From positions 80,759-116,767 of the forward strand of contig NC_068992.1 in the NCBI RefSeq assembly GCF_001194135.2: DNA of 36,009 nucleotides, in the 5' to 3' direction. Under the pieces are notes generated by a model. That model was not told where the DNA came from, did not search any database, and saw only the letters and a program-made list of their open reading frames with translations. Positions 3,458 through 34,690 of this stretch are shown here, in pieces. Position 1 is the stretch's first letter, and every line of letters starts with the position of its first letter. The DNA is from Octopus bimaculoides (lineage: Eukaryota). The position numbers were made by a program, and so were the translations under genes.

Positions 3458-4158
3458 NNNNNNNNNNNNNNNNNNNNNNNNNNNNNNNNNNNNNNNNNNN
3501 NNNNNNNNNNNNNNNNNNNNNNNNNNNNNNNNNNNNNNNNNNNNNNNNNNNNNNNNNNNNNNNNNNNNNNNNNNNNNNNNNNNNNNNNNNNNNNNNNNNN
3601 NNNNNNNNNNNNNNNNNNNNNNNNNNNNNNNNNNNNNNNNNNNNNNNNNNNNNNNNNNNNNNNNNNNNNNNNNNNNNNNNNNNNNNNNNNNNNNNNNNNN
3701 NNNNNNNNNNNNNNNNNNNNNNNNNNNNNNNNNNNNNNNNNNNNNNNNNNNNNNNNNNNNNNNNNNNNNNNNNNNNNNNNNNNNNNNNNNNNNNNNNNNN
3801 NNNNNNNNNNNNNNNNNNNNNNNNNNNNNNNNNNNNNNNNNNNNNNNNNNNNNNNNNNNNNNNNNNNNNNNNNNNNNNNNNNNNNNNNNNNNNNNNNNNN
3901 NNNNNNNNNNNNNNNNNNNNNNNNNNNNNNNNNNNNNNNNNNNNNNNNNNNNNNNNNNNNNNNNNNNNNNNNNNNNNNNNNNNNNNNNNNNNNNNNNNNN
4001 NNNNNNNNNNNNNNNNNNNNNNNNNNNNNNNNNNNNNNNNNNNNNNNNNNNNNNNNNNNNNNNNNNNNNNNNNNNNNNNNNNNNNNNNNNNNNNNNNNNN
4101 NNNNNNNNNNNNNNNNNNNNNNNNNNNNNNNNNNNNNNNNNNNNNNNNNNNNNNNNNN
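3458..4158. other. Assembly gap (N run); further gaps at 980-989, 15526-15625 and 26745-26782
   Basis: N characters; three of the four gaps (not 15526-15625) abut a (TA)n run. Confidence 1.
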
Positions 4159-14936: not shown

Positions 14937-15669
14937 TCACTCTTCAACTATAGAAAATAGATATTTTCTCATTAAACAAGAACTGATTTTATTTCATCAT
15001 TTTGATATAACCAACAGATATTTCAATAAAAAATAAATTTAAAATAACAGAAATTAAAATGAAACCAAAAAAGAGAAAATATGCAAAAACTGAACCTTAT
15101 CACAGAAATTTCCATGGTTCCAGTGGATCAGAATTTTTGTTGTGGAACCATAGTCCAAACAGAAAACAAATTGCTGTATTAAACATGTCACAGACGCAAT
15201 CCTGTTGACTGAGGTTTTCCTAGAAGTTTGAAGTATTTAGTAATTTTTTTAATCAGTCTACCAGTTCAATGTGAATTGCAACATTGATAATTTATTAGGG
15301 AAAAGAACATTATGAACAGAAATCACCATCATACAATAGAAATGACTTGATAAACACATTTTGTATTTTCAAACTGATTTCATTTGGATAGGAACACTTT
15401 TTTTCTCATAATATATTAACACATCAAAGAATTCCTGGCATTCAACTAGGCAACTTAGGTTTCTTGCATACAAATGCAATTTTCGTAAATTATATACATA
15501 ATTTATATACATATATTTTTGTATANNNNNNNNNNNNNNNNNNNNNNNNNNNNNNNNNNNNNNNNNNNNNNNNNNNNNNNNNNNNNNNNNNNNNNNNNNN
15601 NNNNNNNNNNNNNNNNNNNNNNNNNATTTTTCATTCCAGGTGCCATTATATTAAACATTTGCAAAGAGT

Positions 15670-20269: not shown

Positions 20270-22050
20270 GGGGAGAGGCATTAGCTGATATTGTCAAAAC
20301 CAGTGCTTGACTGATACTTTGTTTTATTGATCCTGAAAGGCTAAAAGGCAAATTTGGACGTGGTAGGATTTGAACTTAGAATGGAAGAACCAGAAGTTGA
20401 TGTTCTAATGATTCTGCTAATCCAATGAAAAACATGCACGAGAAACATGGCAATTTCATATTTCTATTCATAGTTTCATTTGCCTCTCCTCTCGAAATTG
20501 CTGGCCTTGTGCAAAAATTAGAAAGAATTGTTAAATATTTCGAGTGCAACACTCCAGCCTGTTTAATTATGTTAAAAATATTTCGATTTTATCTTTGATC
20601 TCATTCTGTAGTTTTGGGGTCTATTTTCACTCTCTGACCACTGCCACCTTCCCCATCCGCTAACCTTCTCACCTCCCTTCTTTTCTCATTATCTAATTAC
20701 AAACAATTAACAACAACAATTGAAGTGAAGTAAAGGTTATTTCCCTTTGAAAATTTGACACTCATCATGTCAAGTTGAATAATAATGATAATAATAATAA
20801 CAATAACAACGATTTCAAATTTTGGCACTAGGCCAGCAATTTTGGGGACGGGGTAAGTCGATTGCTTTGACCCCAGTACTCAATTGGTACTTATTTTATC
20901 GACCCTGAAAAGATGGAAGGCAAAGTTGACCTCGGCAGAATTTGAACTCAGAATGTAACGACAGGCCAAATACCACTAAGCATTTTTTCTGACGTGCTAA
21001 CAATTCTGCCAGCTCACCACCTTAATAATAATAATCCTTTCTACTATAGGTACAAGGCCTGAAATTGTTGGGGAGGGAGCTAGTTAATTACATCGACCCC
21101 AGTGTTTCACTGGTACTTAATTTATTGACCCCGAAAGGATGATAGGCAAAGTCAGCCTTGGCAGAATTTGAACTCAGAATGAAGTGATGGGGCAAAATAC
21201 TGCTAAGCATTTCGTCCAGTGTGCTAACAATTCTGCCAGCTCACCACCTTAATATTAGAATAATAATAATAATTATAATAATAATAATAATAATAATAAT
21301 AATGTTTTCAAATTTTGGGACAAGGCCAGCAAGTCCGGGGGAGGGTATAAGTCGATTGCATTGACCCCAGTACTCAACTGGCACTTAATTTATTGACCCT
21401 GAAAGGATGAAAGGCAAAGTCGACTGTGGCAGAATTTGAACTCAGAATGTAAAGACGGGTGAAAAACTGTTAAGCCCGGTGTGCTAATGATTCTGCCAGG
21501 TCACCGCCTTAATAATAATAGTAATAATAATAATAATGATAATAATAATAATAACCTGGTAATTAAGAACTATCCGAGAGTCTTTCATAATAAACAAAAT
21601 AATAATGACGATAATATACCATGTTGGAACAATCCAGAAAGGGTGATGGAGGGGTAGAGTTGATTAAATCAACCTCAGTGTATAACTGGTATCGTTTTTT
21701 ATTGATACAACAAAGATGAAAGGCAAAGTTAACACTGTTGGGATTTGAAATCAAAACAGTGAAGTTAAAATTCCTCAAAGCATTTTGTTTCTTTGGTGCT
21801 CTACCGATTTTCCATAATAATAATCATAATAATGGTTTCAAATTTTGGCAAAAGGCCAGCAATTTCAGAGTGGGGTAAGTCGATTACATCAACCTGCCTC
21901 AGTACATGACTGGTACTCACTTTATCAACCCTGAAAGGATGAAAGGCAAAGTTGACCTCAATGGGATTTGAACTCAGAATGTAAAGGTGAACAAAATGCT
22001 GCTGAACATTTTGCCTGGTGTGCTAATGATTCTGCCACCTTGCTACCATG

Positions 22051-22129
<79 letters not shown>

Positions 22130-22318
22130 TGATGATGATGATGATGATTATTTCAAATATCGGCTCAATTTTTCGAGGGGGGTGGGTTAAGTTGATTACT
22201 TCGACCCCAGTGATCAAGTGGTACTCATTTTATTGACCCTGGGAAGATGAAATGCAAATTGACCTCAGCAGAATTTGACCTAAGAATGTCAAAACGGATG
22301 AAATGGAAATGCTGCTGC

Positions 22319-22352
<34 letters not shown>

Positions 22353-22567
22353 CCTTTCTGCTCTAGGCACAAGGCCTGAAATTTTGGGGGAGGGGACTAG
22401 TCAGTTACATCAACCCCAGTATGCAACTGGTACTTAATTTATCAATCCCGAAAAGATGAAAGGCAAAGTCGACCTCAGCGGAATTTGAACTCAGAACGTA
22501 GCGACGGGTGAAATACCACTAAGCATTTTGTCCAGAGTGCTAATATTTCTGCCAGCTTTCTGCCTTA
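20270..22567 (-). mobile_element. Largest SINE family B array (about eight copies) with (AAT)n spacers
   Basis: Units at about 20270, 20812, 21035, 21305, 21630, 21835, 22150 and 22350, all on minus. Confidence 0.87.
22051..22148. repeat. (AAT)n(GAT)n microsatellite
   Basis: Direct reading. Confidence 0.95.
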
Positions 22568-22605
22568 GTAGTAATAATAATAATAATAATAATCATCATC
22601 ATCAT

Positions 22606-22768
22606 CATCGTCGTTTAACGTCCGCTTTCCATGCTAGCATGGGTTGGACGATTTGACTGAGGACTGGTGAAACCGGATGGCTACACCAGGCTCCAGTCTG
22701 ATTTGGCAGAGTTTCTACAGCTGGATGCCCTTCCTAATGCCAACCACTCAGAGAGTGTAGTGGGTGAA
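22606..22768 (-). mobile_element. Family C 3' end, near-identical to 60-227
   Basis: Reverse complement of the window-start copy. Confidence 0.8.
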
Positions 22769-22779
22769 TAATGGTAATA

Positions 22780-24360
22780 ACAACAACAACAATCAGAATA
22801 TTAATGTTACCTTAATGAAAGACTCAATTTCCATCTGATAACGATGAAGTTGTAAATGAATCAGAAATTGTGTTGATATAAATATCTGGAAATTGAGATA
22901 ACAGTGTGGGGACTGAAAACAGAAGGAAACCCTTGTGGTTATAGAGGGAACTCCCTGTAATTATAGGGTGTTTTGAGAATGATGAAAGAAATATATCTAC
23001 TGGTAAATGTATCCCCAAAACCCTATAACTTACAAATATGAACAATATACAGAAAATGGTGCAACTAGACACTGCACACATGTTGTGAAGAATTGTGTGA
23101 AAACAAACAGAAAATATGAAACCAAAGCAAAATACTTCATACGCCCGAGGCATAGAGAGTAGTTCTCAGTCTTGCAGTAAAAACACACACTAAAATAAGA
23201 TTACAAAAAGAAATAATGATAAAAATAAAATAAAATAATATTTTATATTCAAACAGTATGTATTAGAAAAATCTCAGATAAATTTAATGTAGTTGCCTAC
23301 AGTTTATAATATCTGTGCTGGAGAAATTAAACAAATGTACATAAATCATGTTATTCTCTTTGTACACAGAAAAATAAAGGAGATTATTTGGATATGTTTT
23401 ATAGCTGATTAGCCACTTTCCAGAAGATAAGTGCCCCTTATTCATCTGTTTACAAAGAGATCAGAATAGCAAATGCTTTTTAAATCAAATACAAACCAAG
23501 ATTTAACTGAAATGGCTAAACTAATATGTATATATATCATGCATTTGTTGGTGGCATGATTAAATAATTAAGAAATAAGCACAAGGACATTAATTTGGAA
23601 TATGATGGGAGAAGTCGATTTAATCCTCTAAACCCTAATCATGAGATATCTTTAAATAAGTGAAGGTAGTAAATAAATTTAGATTCTATGGACTTGACTG
23701 TTATCATCATTACAGAGTAACATCCAGTTTTGTAAGAATTGAATTCAGAAAAATAAAACAGATTTAATTAAACATTTCAAGAAATTTAATTTTTTGTTTC
23801 TGTCAAACAAATTTCTTACATTTGTTTACAAAAACTTATTTTGTAGAGAAGGGCAAATATCTGAATCAAGTACCCCTGCCCTCAGCGTATGACTGTATTT
23901 TGATAATCCCATGGTATAATAGATTAAATCGACTTCACTATTATCAGGAGTTAGAAACAATGCAGAGGTATTAAACTAAATATTTTCTGCAAAAATCATT
24001 TAGTTTGGGGCTCTGCAATTTCTGCTTAATTCTTCACCCGAGCACCTCATTTGATAACAACAACAACAATAACAACAATAATGTCATCAACAACAACAAC
24101 AACAACAGTTGTAGTAGCAGTAACAACAACAACAATGTTGACTGCTATGTCTATAACAATGAGAATGCATGCGCTGGGGCTGGGGTACAGGCTGGATTTG
24201 TTTCCTTTCTGTTTCTCAGAGGCAATGGAAATGATGATGGTGGCATGGTGGTGGTGGTGGTGGTGGTGGCGGAGGTGGTGGTGTTGGCAGTGGTAGTGGT
24301 GGTGATGATGGCAGTGGAAGAGGTGACAGTCATGGAGTAACAATGCTATGATATCTATGT
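22780..24360 (-). other. Probable Kv-beta 3' UTR, with (CAC)n and (AAC)n tracts near its start
   Basis: About 1.6 kb of unique sequence without recognisable SINEs directly downstream of the terminal exon. The end point was not determined and no clear AATAAA was found. Confidence 0.4.
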
Positions 24361-24573
24361 CTACTGGATAGAACATGGAGGTGAACCGAGTGCTGCATCG
24401 TGCTGGTGGAGGGCATGTCGTGAGGGCATGTGGCTGACAATGTGGGTGGTGGTGGCACCACTGCTGCTGCCGGATTGTCCTGAAGTGCCAGCATTAGCTG
24501 AGCTCCCAGCAGCAGCACCGGCAGCGGTTCCGCTGCCACTACCACCCCCTCCAGCCGCCCTGTCCAAGTCTAG
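24361..24573 (-). CDS. Putative stop-codon readthrough extension of Kv-beta (70 codons + TAG), ending in CaaX-like CSIQ
   Basis: In frame after TGA-CTAG: LDLDRAAGGGGSGSGTAAGAAAGSSANAGTSGQSGSSSGATTTHIVSHMPSRHALHQHDAALGSPPCSIQ*. Hand count gives 130/210 G+C over 24361-24570 in an AT-rich locus. Confidence 0.62.
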   Translation of the reverse strand, partial: LDLDRAAGGGGSGSGTAAGAAAGSSANAGTSGQSGSSSGATTTHIVSHMPSRHALHQHDAALGSPPCSIQ

Positions 24574-24576
24574 TCA
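24570..24576 (-). promoter_or_regulatory. Readthrough-permissive stop context UGA-CUAG
   Basis: Plus strand reads ctagtca at 24570-24576, i.e. TGACTAG on minus. The same context is used by vertebrate AQP4, OPRK1, OPRL1, MAPK10, LDHB and MDH1 readthrough. Confidence 0.75.
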
Positions 24577-24666
24577 CCTGGGTGGATGCTCCTTGCGTGA
24601 AAGAGGTTTGTTGCCAAGTAATTTGTCCAATTCATTCATCAACGATGGTGTTAATTTTGGAACATA
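24574..24666 (-). CDS. KCNAB: Kv-beta terminal coding exon up to the first stop (TGA at 24576-24574)
   Basis: YVPKLTPSLMNELDKLLGNKPLSRKEHPPR* matches [29 protein letters not shown]. Acceptor gttcttgtattaCAG; phase 0 fits the previous exon. Confidence 0.94.
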   Translation of the reverse strand, partial: YVPKLTPSLMNELDKLLGNKPLSRKEHPPR

Positions 24667-25436
24667 CTGTAATACAAGAACAAACAGTGTGGTGAGAGAA
24701 GGTCACTGACGGAATGTAATAACGAGTATTATTAAACATCTAGAATGAATTTTAATAAGCATATATCGTTAGTTATTTCTATTAATGAGGCAGAGATAAA
24801 GAGATTGTAATAAATCTTTGAGTATGTATAATACACACATACACACAGATATATATACACACAGATATATATAATACACACATACACACAGATATATGTG
24901 GAAAAATGAACATTAAAGGGTTGTGATGATAAGTGAGATTCTAGAATTGGAATCTCTTACTCGAATCCAGGAACTCCTTCGAGAGTGTCAGGTTCTTCCA
25001 ATTTAAGTGAAAAAAAGTTTGTTTTTGAATTATATTCATTTGTTTGGTTATGATTAGATGGTTGTGCATGTTATGTGATATACTTTACACAATGGATATA
25101 ACAATATCATTGTTCTTGATCATGTCTATCTATATGACGTTTTGGTTGTTGAAACAACTATAAACTATAGAATAAATGTAAGACCAGCTACTTCATTATT
25201 CACTTATTACATATATTATGAGCAGGTTTGTACAACCATCCAGTATCATTACATTGGTCCCCCTGTGCAGACCTCAAAATGGTTAACACAAACAGAAAGC
25301 TGAGATGGTATGGCCATGTAGTAAGATCCACTTTCTGACCTCTTTCACGACTCTTTATCCAATCTCTCACTTCTTGTTCTGCTTAGTTTATTTTGTCAAC
25401 CATCCTCAACTATAACAATATCTGTTTCAATGCCAA

Positions 25437-25950
25437 GTGAGACCTAAATCCAAGGCCTCCGCCAGGGGTGTAGCCAGCCCACTTATGCGTACCTTCCTTC
25501 ATTGGACACAACTCCACTTGCGAAGACCTGTTGAGGCAAGTGAAATCGGAATCAAAATCAAACTAAATTCGATGACTGGCACCCATGCTAACGCTGTCTC
25601 CCTCATTGGATATGAAACTCGGCTTGTGAAGACCTGTTGGGGCAAGTGAAAGCGAAATCATGATGCCACCTGTGTCCAGCGTCACCTTCCTGGCACTTGT
25701 GCCGGTGGCATGTGTAAAGACATTCAAGCGAGATCGTGCCAGTGCCATTGGACTGGCTCCTGTGCAGGTGGCACGTAAAAGCACCCACTACACTCTCGGA
25801 GTGGTTGGCGTTAGGAAGGGCATCTAGCTGTAGAAACTCTGCCAAATCAGATTGGAGCCTGGTGCAGCCATCTGGTTCGCTAGTCCCCAGTCAAATCAGC
25901 GAACCCATGCTAGCATGGAAAGCGGATGTTGAATGATGATGATGATGATG
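25437..25950 (+). mobile_element. Family C, longer copy (intronic)
   Basis: Contains an internal duplicated gaagacctgttg.ggcaagtgaaa and the family C tail with (GAT)n. Confidence 0.75.
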
Positions 25951-25981
<31 letters not shown>

Positions 25982-26039: not shown

Positions 26040-26410
26040 TTATTCTTTTACTTGTCTCAGTCATTTCGACTGCTGCCATGCTGGAGCACCACCTTTAGTC
26101 AAACAAATCGACCCCAGGACTCATTCTTTGCAAGTCTTCTATCGGTGTCTTTGCTGAACCACTAAGTTCCAGGGATGTAAACATGCCAACATCGGTTGTC
26201 AAGCAATGATGGGGTGTGTGACAAACACACACACAGATACACACACATGACAGGCATCTTTCAGCTTCTGTCTACCAAATCCACTCTCAAGGCTTTGGCC
26301 GGCTTGAAGCTACAGTAGAAGACACTTGCTCAAGGTGTCACACAGTGAGACAGAAACCCAGAACTATGTGGTTGGGAAGCAAGCTTCTTACCATACAACC
26401 ACTCCTGCAC
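26040..26410 (-). mobile_element. SINE family A, full-length copy (intronic)
   Basis: Reverse complement of the family A consensus. Confidence 0.82.
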
Positions 26411-26894
26411 TGATATATTTCTTGTAAACGCTAAGTTCTACGTATTACGTTTAAAATTTTAGTTTAAAAGCATTTCTTCGATAAGATAAGTTATGATTTT
26501 ATTTTAAGAAATTTTGTTAAATGTTTTTCGATTATTTATTTATTTATTGTTAAAACAAGTATTTTTTAATATTTTTATTTGATATTTATTATAAGTTACA
26601 ATACGTATATTGATATTATTATTATTATTATTATTATTATTATCTATATCTTAATTTAGACCTGATGTGTGACTATATTTTTGAATAGATTTAATTGCAG
26701 ATCGATTTGCTTATTAATTGAATTGGTTTTATTAGTTATCAATTNNNNNNNNNNNNNNNNNNNNNNNNNNNNNNNNNNNNNNATATATATATATATAGGG
26801 AGAGAGTGAAAGAGATTCGGTGGAATCATGAACTTAAGTTGAAGCACCAAGTCAGTCTGGTGTTATCTGCACAGCTCGAAGTAAGGTGAATAAA

Positions 26895-27179
26895 ATCAAA
26901 ATAAACAACAGCATATCAAATAGTGATGCAGTACGACCGTTTCAAGTGAATTCATTTAATTGAACAATGCAACCATGACATTAATTTAAATGCATTGCTA
27001 TCTTCAGCTGCACAAATTATATTAATGTATCCTACCTGTTGAAATTCCATATATTTTTTTGTGCAGCTGAAGATAGCATTGCATTTAAATTTATGTAATG
27101 ATTGCATTGTTTAATTAAATGGAGCCGCTTGAAGCGGTCGTACTGCATCACTACTTGATATCCTGTTGCTTATTTTGAT
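26895..27179. repeat. Long inverted repeat, 122-bp arms, 41-nt spacer, in the last Kv-beta intron
   Basis: 26895-27016 versus the reverse complement of 27058-27179: 13 mismatches in 122 by hand alignment. Confidence 0.92.
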
Positions 27180-27236: not shown

Positions 27237-27400
27237 CGACTGGCTTCTTTCAGTTTCTGTCTACCAAATCCACTCACAAGGCGCTTTGGTCGGCCTAAGG
27301 CTATAATAGAAGACGTTAGCTCAAGGTGCCACACAGTGGGACTAAATCCAGAACCAAGTGGTTAGGAAGCAAGCTTGTTACCACACAACTACTCTTGTGC
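27237..27400 (-). mobile_element. SINE family A, head fragment
   Basis: ggcttctttcagtttc...caaggtgccacacagtgggact...ccacacaact. Confidence 0.8.
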
Positions 27401-27817: not shown

Positions 27818-27906
27818 CTGCAGAGCTTGGAGATTTTCATAAAGTTGGTCTACTGATGTAGCTCCAAGTAAAACACAATGAATGGCTTCCTGTCTCAGAC
27901 ACCAGG
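27818..27906 (-). CDS. KCNAB: Kv-beta exon (89 nt, phase 1 to 0); not in the ORF track
   Basis: (A)WCLRQEAIHCVLLGATSVDQLYENLQALQ matches [30 protein letters not shown]. Acceptor ctccttatatttCAG, donor GTATTT. Confidence 0.95.
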
Positions 27907-28199: not shown

Positions 28200-28620
28200 A
28201 GGCGCAGGAGTGGCTGTGTGGTAAGTAGCTTGCTTACCAACCACATGGTTCCGGGTTCAGTCCCACTGCGTGGCACCTTGGGCAAGTGTCTTCTACTATA
28301 GCCTCGGGCCGACCAAAGCCTTGTGAGTGGATTTGGTAGGCGGAAACTGGAAGAAGTCCGTCGTATATATGTATATATATGTATGTGTTTGTGTGTCTGT
28401 GTTTGTTCCTCCCCCTCCCCCCCAGCATCGCTTGACAACCGATACTGGTGTGTTCACGTCCCCGTAACTTAGCGGTTCGGCAAAAAGTGACCCGATAGAA
28501 TAAGTACTAGGCTTACAAAGAATAAGTCCTGGGGTCGATTTGATTCGACTAAAGGCGGTGCTCCAGCATGGCCGCAGTCAAATGACTGAAACAAGTAAAA
28601 GAGTAAAAGAGAAAAAGAGT
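28200..28620 (+). mobile_element. tRNA-derived SINE family A, full-length copy
   Basis: A-box-like TGGCTGTGTGG, B-box-like GGTTCAGTCCC, ggcaccttgggcaagtgtcttc core, internal (TA/TG)n, and tail ...ccagcatggccgcagtcaaatgactgaaacaagtaaaagag. Many copies in the window. Confidence 0.85.
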
Positions 28621-29050: not shown

Positions 29051-29171
29051 CTATTGCCAGTTGAGCTAATGAGCAACCTAATCTATCAGCAACGACTGCC
29101 ACTTCTCTTAGACGTGCTTGCTGTTTGCGGCCCTCCTCACTGAGAATTTTATCTTTCAGCCATCCGTAATT
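29051..29171 (-). CDS. KCNAB: Kv-beta exon (121 nt, phase 0 to 1); not in the ORF track
   Basis: [40 protein letters not shown](A) matches [41 protein letters not shown]. Acceptor atttctctgCAG, donor GTAAGA. Confidence 0.96.
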
Positions 29172-30404: not shown

Positions 30405-30499
30405 CTTTAGGGCAGCACGAGAATAGATCGGTACTCCATCGTCATACTTCCCTGAAAGAATTCCTGATGCTAATGGGGACCAGCAAATTGTTCCAACAC
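30405..30499 (-). CDS. KCNAB: Kv-beta exon (95 nt, phase 1 to 0), cofactor-binding WSPL segment
   Basis: (G)[31 protein letters not shown] matches Kv-beta [32 protein letters not shown]. Acceptor catttctttTAG, donor GTATAT. Confidence 0.96.
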
Positions 30500-31637: not shown

Positions 31638-31758
31638 CAATTTTAGTGTAGATCTCATGCATGTGAAGCTCAACTTTATCTCGATGAAACATGTTATATT
31701 CAGCTTGTTCAGCAGTTGGTGGGATCAGGTTGAACTGGCGTGCCACAGCGTAACTTTC
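31638..31758 (-). CDS. KCNAB: Kv channel beta subunit (aldo-keto reductase family), internal exon (121 nt, phase 0 to 1)
   Basis: Translates [40 protein letters not shown](G), matching vertebrate Kv-beta EAYSVARQFNL.PP.CEQAEYHMFQREKVE...KIG. Acceptor ccctatgTAG, donor GTAAAG. Confidence 0.96.
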
Positions 31759-33459: not shown

Positions 33460-33870
33460 TAGGTGTACTTGTGTGGTAAGAAGCTTGCTTCCAAACTACG
33501 TGGTTCTGGGTTCAGTTCCACTACATGGCACCTCGGGCAAGTGTCTTCTGCTATAGCCTTAGGCTGACTAAAGCTTTGTGAGTGGATTTGATAGAAAGAA
33601 ACTGAAAGAGGCCCGTCGTATATACGTGTATATATGTGTGTGTGTGTGTGTGTGTGTTTGTGCCTGTATGCCCTGCCACCACCACTACTTTACAACTGGT
33701 GCTGGTGTGTTCCCCTACCCTGCAACCTAGTGGTTCATCAACAGAGACTCACAGAATTAGTACCAGGCTTTTAAAAAAAAGTACAGGGTCGATTCATTTG
33801 ACTTAAAGTTCTGCAAGGCAGTGCCCCAGCATGGCCACAGTCTATCGACTGAAACAAGTAGCAGATAAGA
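33460..33870 (+). mobile_element. SINE family A, diverged copy
   Basis: Head gtgtggtaagaagcttgc...gggttcagttcc; tail ccagcatggccacagtc...gactgaaacaagta. Confidence 0.78.
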
Positions 33871-33946: not shown

Positions 33947-34690
33947 CAGGGCAACCTCCGTTCTCAACCATAGTTTGTTCTGAAAGTCTGTTCAAGAACC
34001 GAATCATTTTTTCCTATTACAATTAATGTAAAAGAGATTAATTCGTTTCCAAGCAGCAGATGAATCTTTATTTACATGTTCAGACTCCATATTTTAGTAT
34101 AAAACCGTTTCTCCAAACTGTAAATAGCACACAAAAGTGCATCATTTCTTCCCTTCCATAAAAACTTTTTGGGGGTTTCTTCCCTTCTTGGTCTCTTTGC
34201 TCAGGTAAATCTTTCTCTGGAGTTTTTTTCTTTTTTTCTTTCAGTGAAAACCTATCCAATGTTAGTTGTTTTTGCCTGCATTGTAAAACTTTTCTAAAAT
34301 GAGACATGACATTGTCATTGAAAAGGTTTACTGCTCTATTTGCTACCACTGTATTATCAGGGTGACATTTTCCCACAAAACTTTGCACATCACCTCATTT
34401 AGCACAAATTTCTTTGATTAAAGAACTTGGGACATCCTCCTTTCCTTCCTCCACCTCATAAGACATTTCCTTAGCCAAAGTCTTTTGCTGATCATTTTGA
34501 AGGTGTACAAGTTCTTCAGTGGTAAATTCAGTACAGTGGTCTCCCCCCAGCTCTTCAATATCTCCACTGTCGACATTCAAGCCCATAGTTTATCCCATAG
34601 AGACAATATCATCAACAGTAGCAATTTCCTCGACAGCAGCAGTTACTTGTAGCTGTCTCAAATCTCTCAAAGTCTTGTTAGAAAAGCACA
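33947..34690 (-). mobile_element. pogo/Tigger-like transposon 3' remnant (transposase C-terminus plus one terminal end)
   Basis: EEIATVDDIVSMG*TMGLNVDSGDIEEL...EDVPSSLIKEICAK*GDVQSFVGKCHPD...RAVNLFNDNVMSHFRKVLQCRQKQLTLDRF, a Tigger-type C-terminus. TA-CAGGGCAACCTCCG at 33945 looks like a TIR end with a TA target. Confidence 0.8.

Follow-up and report, generated by a model that had tools for sequence, protein, structure and literature searches.

Flies and mammals provide well-documented cases of functional stop-codon readthrough, and the functions of readthrough extensions have so far been mainly peroxisomal and nuclear targeting. Here we describe a candidate case in a mollusc, at the 3' end of a Kv-beta gene (KCNAB-like, aldo-keto reductase) of Octopus bimaculoides, where the reading frame ends at UGA-CUAG and then stays open for a further 70 codons. 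The stretch analysed, referred to below as the window, comprises 36,009 nt of contig NC_068992.1 (positions 80,759-116,767); it contains the 3' part of the gene, on the minus strand, and all coordinates are those of the window. The closest described systems are mammalian genes which share the stop codon, its 3' context and a conserved in-frame extension: LDHB and MDH1, with a peroxisomal targeting signal (PTS1), and AQP4, OPRK1, OPRL1 and MAPK10. UGA CUA(G) is an experimentally derived high-readthrough consensus, readthrough of LDHB adds a targeting signal, and in LDHBx/MDH1x, as proposed for the octopus Kv-beta, a short targeting signal lies at the very C-terminus of the extension (PMC4359377). 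Kv-beta differs from these genes in carrying a CaaX lipidation box instead of PTS1, in an extension of 35-70 codons that is mostly flexible linker, in a stop codon located within an alternative 5' splice site, in its host, a molluscan channel auxiliary subunit, and in being known here from sequence alone.

A prenylation motif at the end of a readthrough extension has a precedent in Drosophila Syx17, the extension of which displays a predicted farnesyltransferase signal and a positive PhyloCSF score (Dunn et al. 2013, PMC3840789, Table 2). There too, readthrough would append a C-terminal prenylation motif; however, Syx17 is another gene in another phylum and its signal was predicted from one clade, whereas the Kv-beta CaaX box could be followed across octopods, decapodiforms and two non-cephalopod lophotrochozoans. 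In vertebrates, according to Roig et al. 2022 (PMC8994742) as cited in PMC13031570, S-acylation takes the soluble subunit Kv-beta2.1 to membranes/microdomains, so that on this cited account a lipid modification brings a soluble Kv-beta to membranes, as in the octopus form proposed here. The modification described there is nevertheless a different one, palmitoylation at internal cysteines of the normal protein, whereas in the octopus a recoded extension would bear a prenyl group; nor are the sequences related. The stop of the short Kv-beta isoform has the same origin as that of composite terminal exons and intronic polyadenylation isoforms, in which an unused GTGA or GTAA donor supplies the stop codon; in the usual case this stop simply terminates translation, whereas in the octopus gene the nucleotides that follow the donor would also make it leaky and open a selected reading frame. 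Finally, stop-loss adenosine-to-inosine (A-to-I) recoding in cephalopods would lead to this extended protein too, the stop being read as Trp, and the Kv-beta mRNA is edited at other sites; it differs in that the assembled transcripts contain no edited stop, the context is unfavourable to ADAR, and the Kv-beta feature is also present outside cephalopods. The first-pass annotation of this DNA knew of no description of readthrough for a mollusc Kv-beta, and our literature searches likewise found no report of it in any Kv-beta subunit or in cephalopod or mollusc nuclear genes.

From the comparison of this locus across species we infer that programmed readthrough of the UGA is probably the main route past the stop, and that it appends a linker and a predicted prenylation signal; the efficiency of readthrough and its effect on the channel are at the same level of inference. 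The sequence-level features of the UGA-CUAG readthrough class were found here, namely the context, a selected in-frame open reading frame (ORF) with a conserved second stop, and a retained stop codon. The gene itself was identified from five exons in the window, located by stop-to-stop translation, which match O. bimaculoides XP_014785454/XP_052827990 (Kv-beta, P0121/P0122) exactly over the aligned part. Its protein belongs to the Kv-beta/AKR6 family (KCNAB, Hyperkinetic), as indicated by 60-80% identity to bivalve, annelid and vertebrate Kv-beta, all with PF00248.

The minus strand reads ...AAG GAG CAT CCA CCC AGG TGA CTA GAC TTG GAC AGG..., and the Kv-beta frame ends in ...HPPR at the TGA. 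This end of the frame, and the 70 open codons leading to a TAG at 24363-24361, had been read in the same way by the first-pass annotation, and its further statements also held: the GC content, put at ~62% against AT-rich flanks, is 61.4% at 24361-24580 compared to 34.5% and 36.2% in two 1-kb flanks; the proposed Gly/Ala/Ser linker followed by a non-repetitive His-rich tail agrees with the composition (Gly, Ala and Ser 13 each, with 5 His in the tail); and the UGA-CUAG, described as a strong readthrough context, matches the published consensus (PMC4359377). In order, the extension peptide consists of LDLDR, a Gly/Ala/Ser/Thr run, and then HIVSHMPSRHALHQHDAALGSPPCSIQ. No Pfam family was found for it, an exhaustive HMMER search with the 70-aa extension against 1.84 billion representatives yielded 0 matches, and a protein search with the alignment of exon and extension returned 8000 candidates, all of low complexity and none significant. 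Directly past the second stop, at 24050-24330, lie long triplet microsatellites, (CAC/CAT)n followed by (GTT)n on the minus strand, which hold several frames open, so that both strands contain spurious ORFs of 60-111 aa.

The UGA lies within a 5' splice site that is used alternatively, a point that the first-pass annotation had missed, and the TGA is made of donor nucleotides +2 to +4. Two Kv-beta C-termini occur in cephalopods, a short one ending in ...KEHPPR (RefSeq isoforms P0122, P0246 and P0248) and a long one reading ...KEHPPR-VINNPRLRKWLNEIEYFNTSFILSEHE (P0121, P0240-P0245 and, in Argonauta, P0239). The exon at 24577..24666 serves the long isoforms as an internal exon and the short one as a composite terminal exon, where all three short RefSeq sequences stop. 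In the decapodiform long transcript L001 the junction is CCACCCAG|GGTTATTAAC, the continuation starting with GGTTATT; the long-isoform acceptor, TTTCAG|GGTCATT, is located at a downstream distance of 17.7 kb in Argonauta and of 32 kb in O. vulgaris, and in the window the long-isoform terminal exon was not found within the 24.5 kb available downstream. Both forms are present in decapodiform RNA assemblies, with four 336-aa short sequences on 34+6+1+1 contigs and 363-aa long forms on ~23. L003, a transcript of the short form, continues for ~395 nt after the stop in colinearity with genomic DNA of Sepia pharaonis and is therefore unspliced. As in other composite terminal exons, one and the same site thus serves as a donor in some mRNAs and is transcribed through in others, and the short-isoform mRNA is real and abundant. 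The ...R|GTGA arrangement is common in lophotrochozoan Kv-beta genes, the short forms ending in R and the long ones going on after the same R. Since the TGA lies inside the donor, the 70 codons belong to an intron in the long isoforms and to the proximal 3' untranslated region (UTR) in the short one, and the leaky stop would exist only in the unspliced short-isoform mRNA.

The alternative tail of the long isoform, 27 aa in length (VINNPRLRKWLNEIEYFNTSFILSE(H/Q)E), shows no difference between Octopus and Argonauta and differs by one residue in decapodiforms (L015 89921-90001; L016 62555; L001 around 1640-1725). Its conservation greatly exceeds that of the readthrough extension, and no function is known to us. 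At the same retained donor, the oyster short-isoform transcript L023 (1314-1322) presents three tandem stops, TGA TGA TAA, the opposite, fail-safe form of termination. Exon and extension are flanked in the octopus by an inverted repeat pair of ~170 nt with 87-94% complementarity (22595-22766 and 25782-25952, spaced by ~3 kb), one copy in the upstream intron and one downstream; pairing of the two in the pre-mRNA might loop out the exon, with a bearing on splicing choice, editing or back-splicing.

Splicing has also been invoked to reach the extension itself. In the 2015 model UniProt A0A0L8G026 an 18-nt micro-intron (GTGACTAGACTTGGACAG) is removed to give ...HPPR-AAGGGG..., and although the exact junction is present in this protein (P0247, 473 aa) and GT...AG flanks the 18 nt in 6/6 cephalopod sequences, we find such an event hardly credible. 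The junction has been dropped from the current RefSeq models, and none of the assembled transcripts lacks the 18 nt. The corresponding GT...AG intervals of the outgroups measure 22 nt in L018 and 28 nt in L019, and their removal breaks the frame of the CaaX ending, while the 5 codons within the interval change conservatively (third-position D/E swaps: LDLD, LDLE, LESD, LELD), as if translated. To our knowledge, 18 nt is far below the length needed by any known metazoan spliceosomal intron. A correction of the annotation is therefore in order, as A0A0L8G026 arrives at the extension via an impossible 18-nt intron and the RefSeq models leave the extension out. The model maps to 24364-24577 of the window and has an unrelated N-terminus (MMQFTLPEIWKRHALLLG...), probably a mis-fused neighbouring or repeat-derived ORF; it looks like an annotation artefact that happens to include a real coding extension. 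Splicing from the previous exon to an acceptor inside the extension was rejected because of a phase mismatch, as reasoned from the sequence and the exon map.

The selection acting on the extension was read from genomic sequences of O. vulgaris (L016), Argonauta hians (L015) and Sepia pharaonis (L017) alongside the window, from transcriptomes of a Sepia-type species close to S. pharaonis (L003-L010) and of a second decapodiform, DecB (L013/L014), and from four outgroup transcripts (L018, L019, L020 and L023). L013, L018 and L019 belong to the sequencing runs SRR27666080, SRR7235720 and SRR31406942, respectively. Such a comparison of orthologues had been proposed in the first-pass annotation, and its readthrough interpretation came out of it strengthened: AGG TGA CTAG is shared without change by the six cephalopod sequences, each of which has an open frame, the indels are multiples of three and the substitutions mostly synonymous, so that neither loss of CUAG, nor a frameshift, nor a stop in the extension was encountered among them. 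The UGA is retained, and is never a sense codon, in every taxon examined, both in genomic DNA (window, L015, L016, L017) and in RNA assemblies. The extension comprises 70 codons in O. bimaculoides, 68 in O. vulgaris and in Argonauta, and 54 in S. pharaonis, the Sepia-type species and the second decapodiform; its second stop occupies the homologous position throughout, although octopods have TAG there and decapodiforms TGA.

Substitutions within the extension are concentrated at third codon positions. Between O. bimaculoides and Argonauta, 63 aligned codons contain 4/5/23 differences at positions 1/2/3, with a ratio of nonsynonymous to synonymous substitution rates (dN/dS) of 0.12; the corresponding values are 6/6/22 and 0.18 for O. 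vulgaris and Argonauta (61 codons), 8/3/12 and 0.36 for DecA and DecB (54 codons), and 3/2/6 and 0.40 for O. bimaculoides and O. vulgaris (68 codons). The other two sense frames, treated by the same procedure, gave dN/dS of 0.6-3.9 and contained stops. In the last 28 codons, an ungapped and mostly non-repetitive segment made of the His-rich tail, the Thr before it and the CaaX box, 9 of the 11 differences between Octopus and Argonauta fall at third positions (P=0.0014). Nucleotide alignments made without regard to frame contain, within the extension, only indels of 3n length (6; 6,6; 27,12,3,6), whereas right after the second stop other lengths occur as well (8,4,21,14,1 and 1,3,2,6). Because of these third-position substitutions, the frame-specific dN/dS and the 3n indels that reach up to the second stop, the extension appears to be under purifying selection at the protein level, weaker than that on the enzyme core, for which the preceding exon yielded dN/dS of 0.01-0.04. 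Its being both translated and selected is, on this evidence, very probable.

The nucleotides that follow the stop are conserved beyond the cephalopods. CTA is invariant after the stop in 8/8 extension-bearing sequences, as CTAG in the six cephalopods and L019 and as CTAA in L018; all six Leu codons of the preceding exon, in comparison, vary synonymously among the four species aligned. L018 is a bivalve-like transcript, with a Kv-beta 86% identical to that of Dreissena, and reads TGA CTAA followed by 37 codons ending in ...NAPCTVQ*; L019, an unplaced lophotrochozoan with its best match in a chiton (79%), reads TGA CTAG followed by 35 codons ending in ...PSICVTQ*. The two sampled taxa without the extension keep the GTGA donor but not the CUA (TGA AGTG in the annelid-like L020, TGA TGA TAA in the oyster L023), which indicates that CUA tracks the extension and not the splice site. 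These transcripts place the combination of UGA-CUA, extension and putative CaaX box before the origin of cephalopods.

The most constant part of the extension is its end, where a conserved CaaX box of the farnesyltransferase type, as judged from the motif, had been missed by the first-pass annotation. All 8 extension-bearing sequences, which represent at least 7 taxa and include two taxa that are not cephalopods, terminate in Cys-x-x-Gln-stop. O. bimaculoides, O. vulgaris and Argonauta share CSIQ, the two Sepia-type sequences have CSLQ, DecB and L018 have CTVQ, and L019 has CVTQ. In 8/8 the Cys stands exactly 4 codons before the stop, whereas the remainder of the extension is divergent both in sequence and in length (35-70 codons); the a2 residue is aliphatic (I, L or V) in 7/8, and the final residue is Q, the farnesyl class, in 8/8. 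The chance of a Cys at -4 together with a Gln at -1 is ~1e-3 per random ORF end, and 2 of the 4 outgroup transcripts display the combination. CaaX boxes ending in Q, such as those of PDE6A (CCIQ), RAP2A (CNIQ) and STK11 (CKQQ), are given as substrates for the 15-carbon farnesyl group (PMC7674641). On this basis we lean, with some reserve, towards the extension end being farnesylated. A linker, a few basic or His residues and a terminal CaaX box together make up the anatomy that would be expected of a membrane tether, a function suggested by the motif.

The mechanism that we propose begins with the choice at the donor. If CAG|GTGACT is used, the exon is joined to a terminal exon more than 24 kb away and the long isoform ...HPPR-VINNPRLRKWLNEIEYFNTSFILSEHE results; if it is not, the transcript continues into the intron, where GUGA provides the UGA stop of the short isoform, ...HPPR*. 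In this unspliced mRNA the stop lies in UGA-CUAG, the leakiest known metazoan context, and a fraction of the ribosomes would insert a near-cognate Trp, Arg or Cys at the UGA and go on to translate 70 codons. The product would carry a flexible Gly/Ala/Ser/Thr linker, a short His-rich segment and the C-terminal CaaX box CSIQ, and prenylation of the latter by farnesyltransferase would tether an otherwise soluble channel subunit to the membrane. Only tentatively, we regard it as possible that the nine nucleotides CAG|GUGACUAG, in which splice site, stop and leaky context coincide, form an ancient three-way switch, pre-cephalopod and perhaps lophotrochozoan-wide, with a spliced long Kv-beta, a soluble short one and, by readthrough, a farnesyl-anchored one on a flexible tether as its outputs.

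Several observations weigh against readthrough of a selected, lipid-anchored extension. No readthrough-stimulating RNA structure was found to be consistently conserved (z-scores -0.3 to -3.1); a stem ~12-13 nt after the stop is present in decapodiforms and L019 and absent in octopods and L018, and we treat it as unproven. The CUA overlaps donor positions +5 to +7, and part of its conservation could serve splicing. Outside cephalopods the distribution is patchy, with an extension in 2/4 of the transcripts sampled, and neither L018 nor L019 has a species-level assignment. The tail evolves fairly fast, O. vulgaris and O. bimaculoides being separated by several replacements and a 6-nt deletion, and farnesylation is predicted from the motif alone, with a Thr at a2 in L019. 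The Kv-beta mRNA is heavily edited in cephalopods, and UGA-to-UGG editing could contribute to the extended product. As for the open frame itself, 12.7% of composition-matched shuffles contain no in-frame stop (P ~0.13), the +1 frame is likewise open (79 codons), an antisense ORF of 93 aa overlaps the region, and part of the extension is triplet-repeat-like (GGN/GCN/ACC), slippage in such repeats preserving the frame anyway. The openness of the single sequence is thus not above chance, and significance comes only from the cross-species comparison. The antisense ORF (24428-24709, plus strand) was rejected as coding, with 3-4 stops in Argonauta and decapodiforms; its low dN/dS is an artefact of shared wobble positions.

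The chance-level openness, the second open frame and the trinucleotide-repeat-like character of much of the region would also suit a different view of the locus, in which the region is untranslated and conserved as an RNA or DNA element (an intronic regulator of splicing or polyadenylation, or a 3' UTR element adjacent to the alternative donor), the open frame being a by-product of GC-rich triplet repeats. Two more observations agree with it: ~85 nt past the second stop also align with few differences between the two decapodiforms, and an imperfect internal hairpin is formed by 24444-24473 and 24518-24547. Such an element, however, does not predict differences concentrated at the third positions of one frame, indels of 3n length only as far as the second stop and of other lengths beyond it, a stop at the same position from different codons, or Cys-x-x-Gln in 8 diverging sequences, and the antisense frame that shares the wobble positions is the one interrupted by stops in Argonauta and decapodiforms. 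We consider this explanation very unlikely.

A different route to the same protein is provided by RNA editing. In this scenario the extension is translated, but ADAR converts the UGA to UGG (inosine, read as Trp) in a fraction of the short-isoform mRNAs. All of the coding-conservation evidence fits this route equally well, as does the massive recoding of neural transcripts in cephalopods, and decapodiform Kv-beta variants with A-to-G-type changes do occur (K/E/G in AD-x-LGC, R/G in RL-x-EV, R/G in NNP-x-LRK). Squid editing screens extended ORFs only to the stop codon, and a stop loss would probably have gone unrecorded (PMC4384741). The RNA-derived sequences nevertheless argue for an unedited stop: at the level of the assembled consensus, TGA is present in 12/12 decapodiform contigs which reach it (10 Sepia-type and 2 DecB; two further contigs end before the stop and are outside this count), and 0/25 members of three cephalopod protein clusters are TGG-extended, although variants edited elsewhere were assembled. 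The stop is not spanned by any inverted repeat or long duplex, and for its A the predicted pairing probability varies among species, from 0.03 to 0.81. An A preceded by G is the context that ADAR favours least, and UAG would be the expected choice for a stop meant to be edited. The same UGA-CUA, extension and CaaX box occur together in the non-cephalopod transcripts L018 and L019, from groups that are not known to recode on a mass scale, and a conserved CUA would not be needed for editing. We therefore judge editing as the route past the stop to be unlikely, and continue to favour readthrough. The variants AD(K/E/G)LGC, RL(R/G)EV and NNP(R/G)LRK themselves were observed in proteins P0250-P0260 from decapodiform Logan assemblies of one species, and probably mark positions of A-to-I editing, both in the core and in the tail of the long isoform.

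In sequence comparisons, selenoprotein genes are classically recognized by a conserved in-frame UGA with conserved coding sequence after it, and the UGA could in principle encode selenocysteine in a Kv-beta selenoprotein isoform. This is the least probable of the alternatives. No selenocysteine insertion sequence (SECIS) element was detected at E<=10 in L003, L013, L018, L019 or window positions 21000-24800 (3.8 kb around and downstream of the stop), and no orthologue has a Cys at the position of the UGA. Moreover, the site lies in a disordered linker and not in a redox centre, and the CUAG context is typical of readthrough and not of selenocysteine insertion.

If confirmed, readthrough at this locus would extend the UGA-CUAG rule to Lophotrochozoa, across several hundred million years, and lipid anchoring would join the few functions that readthrough extensions are known to confer. 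It would also represent a stop codon dual-coded with a splice donor, linking splicing choice to recoding, and would predict a membrane-tethered Kv-beta pool in cephalopod neurons, formed by a route other than RNA editing. Should the three-way switch hold as well, Kv-beta would be the first ion-channel subunit with membrane anchoring set by translational recoding and the first documented molluscan readthrough gene, and neurons could tune the membrane share of this NADPH-binding redox sensor independently of the alpha subunits. The features described are listed in Table 1.

Table 1. Features of the Kv-beta locus in the window, with the evidence for each
Feature	Position	Strand	Evidence
First stop UGA, proposed readthrough site	24574..24576	-	TGA kept in 9/9 taxa examined
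CUAG context directly 3' of the UGA	24570..24573	-	Cross-species comparison and published consensus
Alternative 5' splice site CAG|GTGACT; donor GTGA supplies the TGA stop	24572..24580	-	Long-isoform junctions
Putative extension ORF, 70 codons, LDLDRAAGGGGSGSGTAAGAAAGSSANAGTSGQSGSSSGATTTHIVSHMPSRHALHQHDAALGSPPCSIQ	24364..24573	-	In frame, open in every extension-bearing taxon
Gly/Ala/Ser/Thr low-complexity linker, extension residues 6-43	24445..24558	-	Composition; length varies among species by whole codons only
Non-repetitive His-rich tail HIVSHMPSRHALHQHDAALGSPP	24376..24444	-	Third-position excess compared to Argonauta
CaaX box Cys-Ser-Ile-Gln, predicted farnesylation signal, extension C-terminus	24364..24375	-	Motif; Cys-x-x-Gln-stop conservation
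Second stop TAG, end of extension	24361..24363	-	Homologous position in all extension-bearing taxa
Last common coding exon YVPKLTPSLMNELDKLLGNKPLSRKEHPPR	24577..24666	-	Acceptor ...ttacag immediately upstream
Kv-beta coding exon, AWCLRQEAIHCV...YENLQALQ	27818..27906	-	Protein match
Kv-beta coding exon, ...SLAQLAI	29051..29171	-	Protein match
Kv-beta coding exon, (G)...SRAALK	30405..30499	-	Protein match
Kv-beta coding exon, ends ...YTKIG	31638..31758	-	Exact protein match to P0121/P0122; boundaries +/-2 nt

The Kv-beta introns contain at least 4 copies of an interspersed repeat of ~130-200 nt that resembles a short interspersed nuclear element (SINE), with 75-84% identity among them; those at 28206-28410 and 33461-33665 are direct and those at 26221-26358 and 27283-27400 inverted, and spurious ORFs within the repeat translate as the (TH)n type. 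Runs of N (assembly gaps) are located at 980-989, 3458-4158, 15526-15625 and 26745-26782, one of them inside a Kv-beta intron. At 34083-34589 on the minus strand, also within an intron, adjacent ORFs of 64 and 104 aa (TMGLNVDSGDIEELGG... and GDVQSFVGKCHPDNTVV...) returned no Pfam match and resemble a decayed mobile-element gene. A further intronic structure is a near-perfect hairpin with arms of 122 nt at 26895-27016 and 27058-27179, 89% complementary and separated by a loop of 41 nt, which has the look of a miniature inverted-repeat transposable element (MITE).

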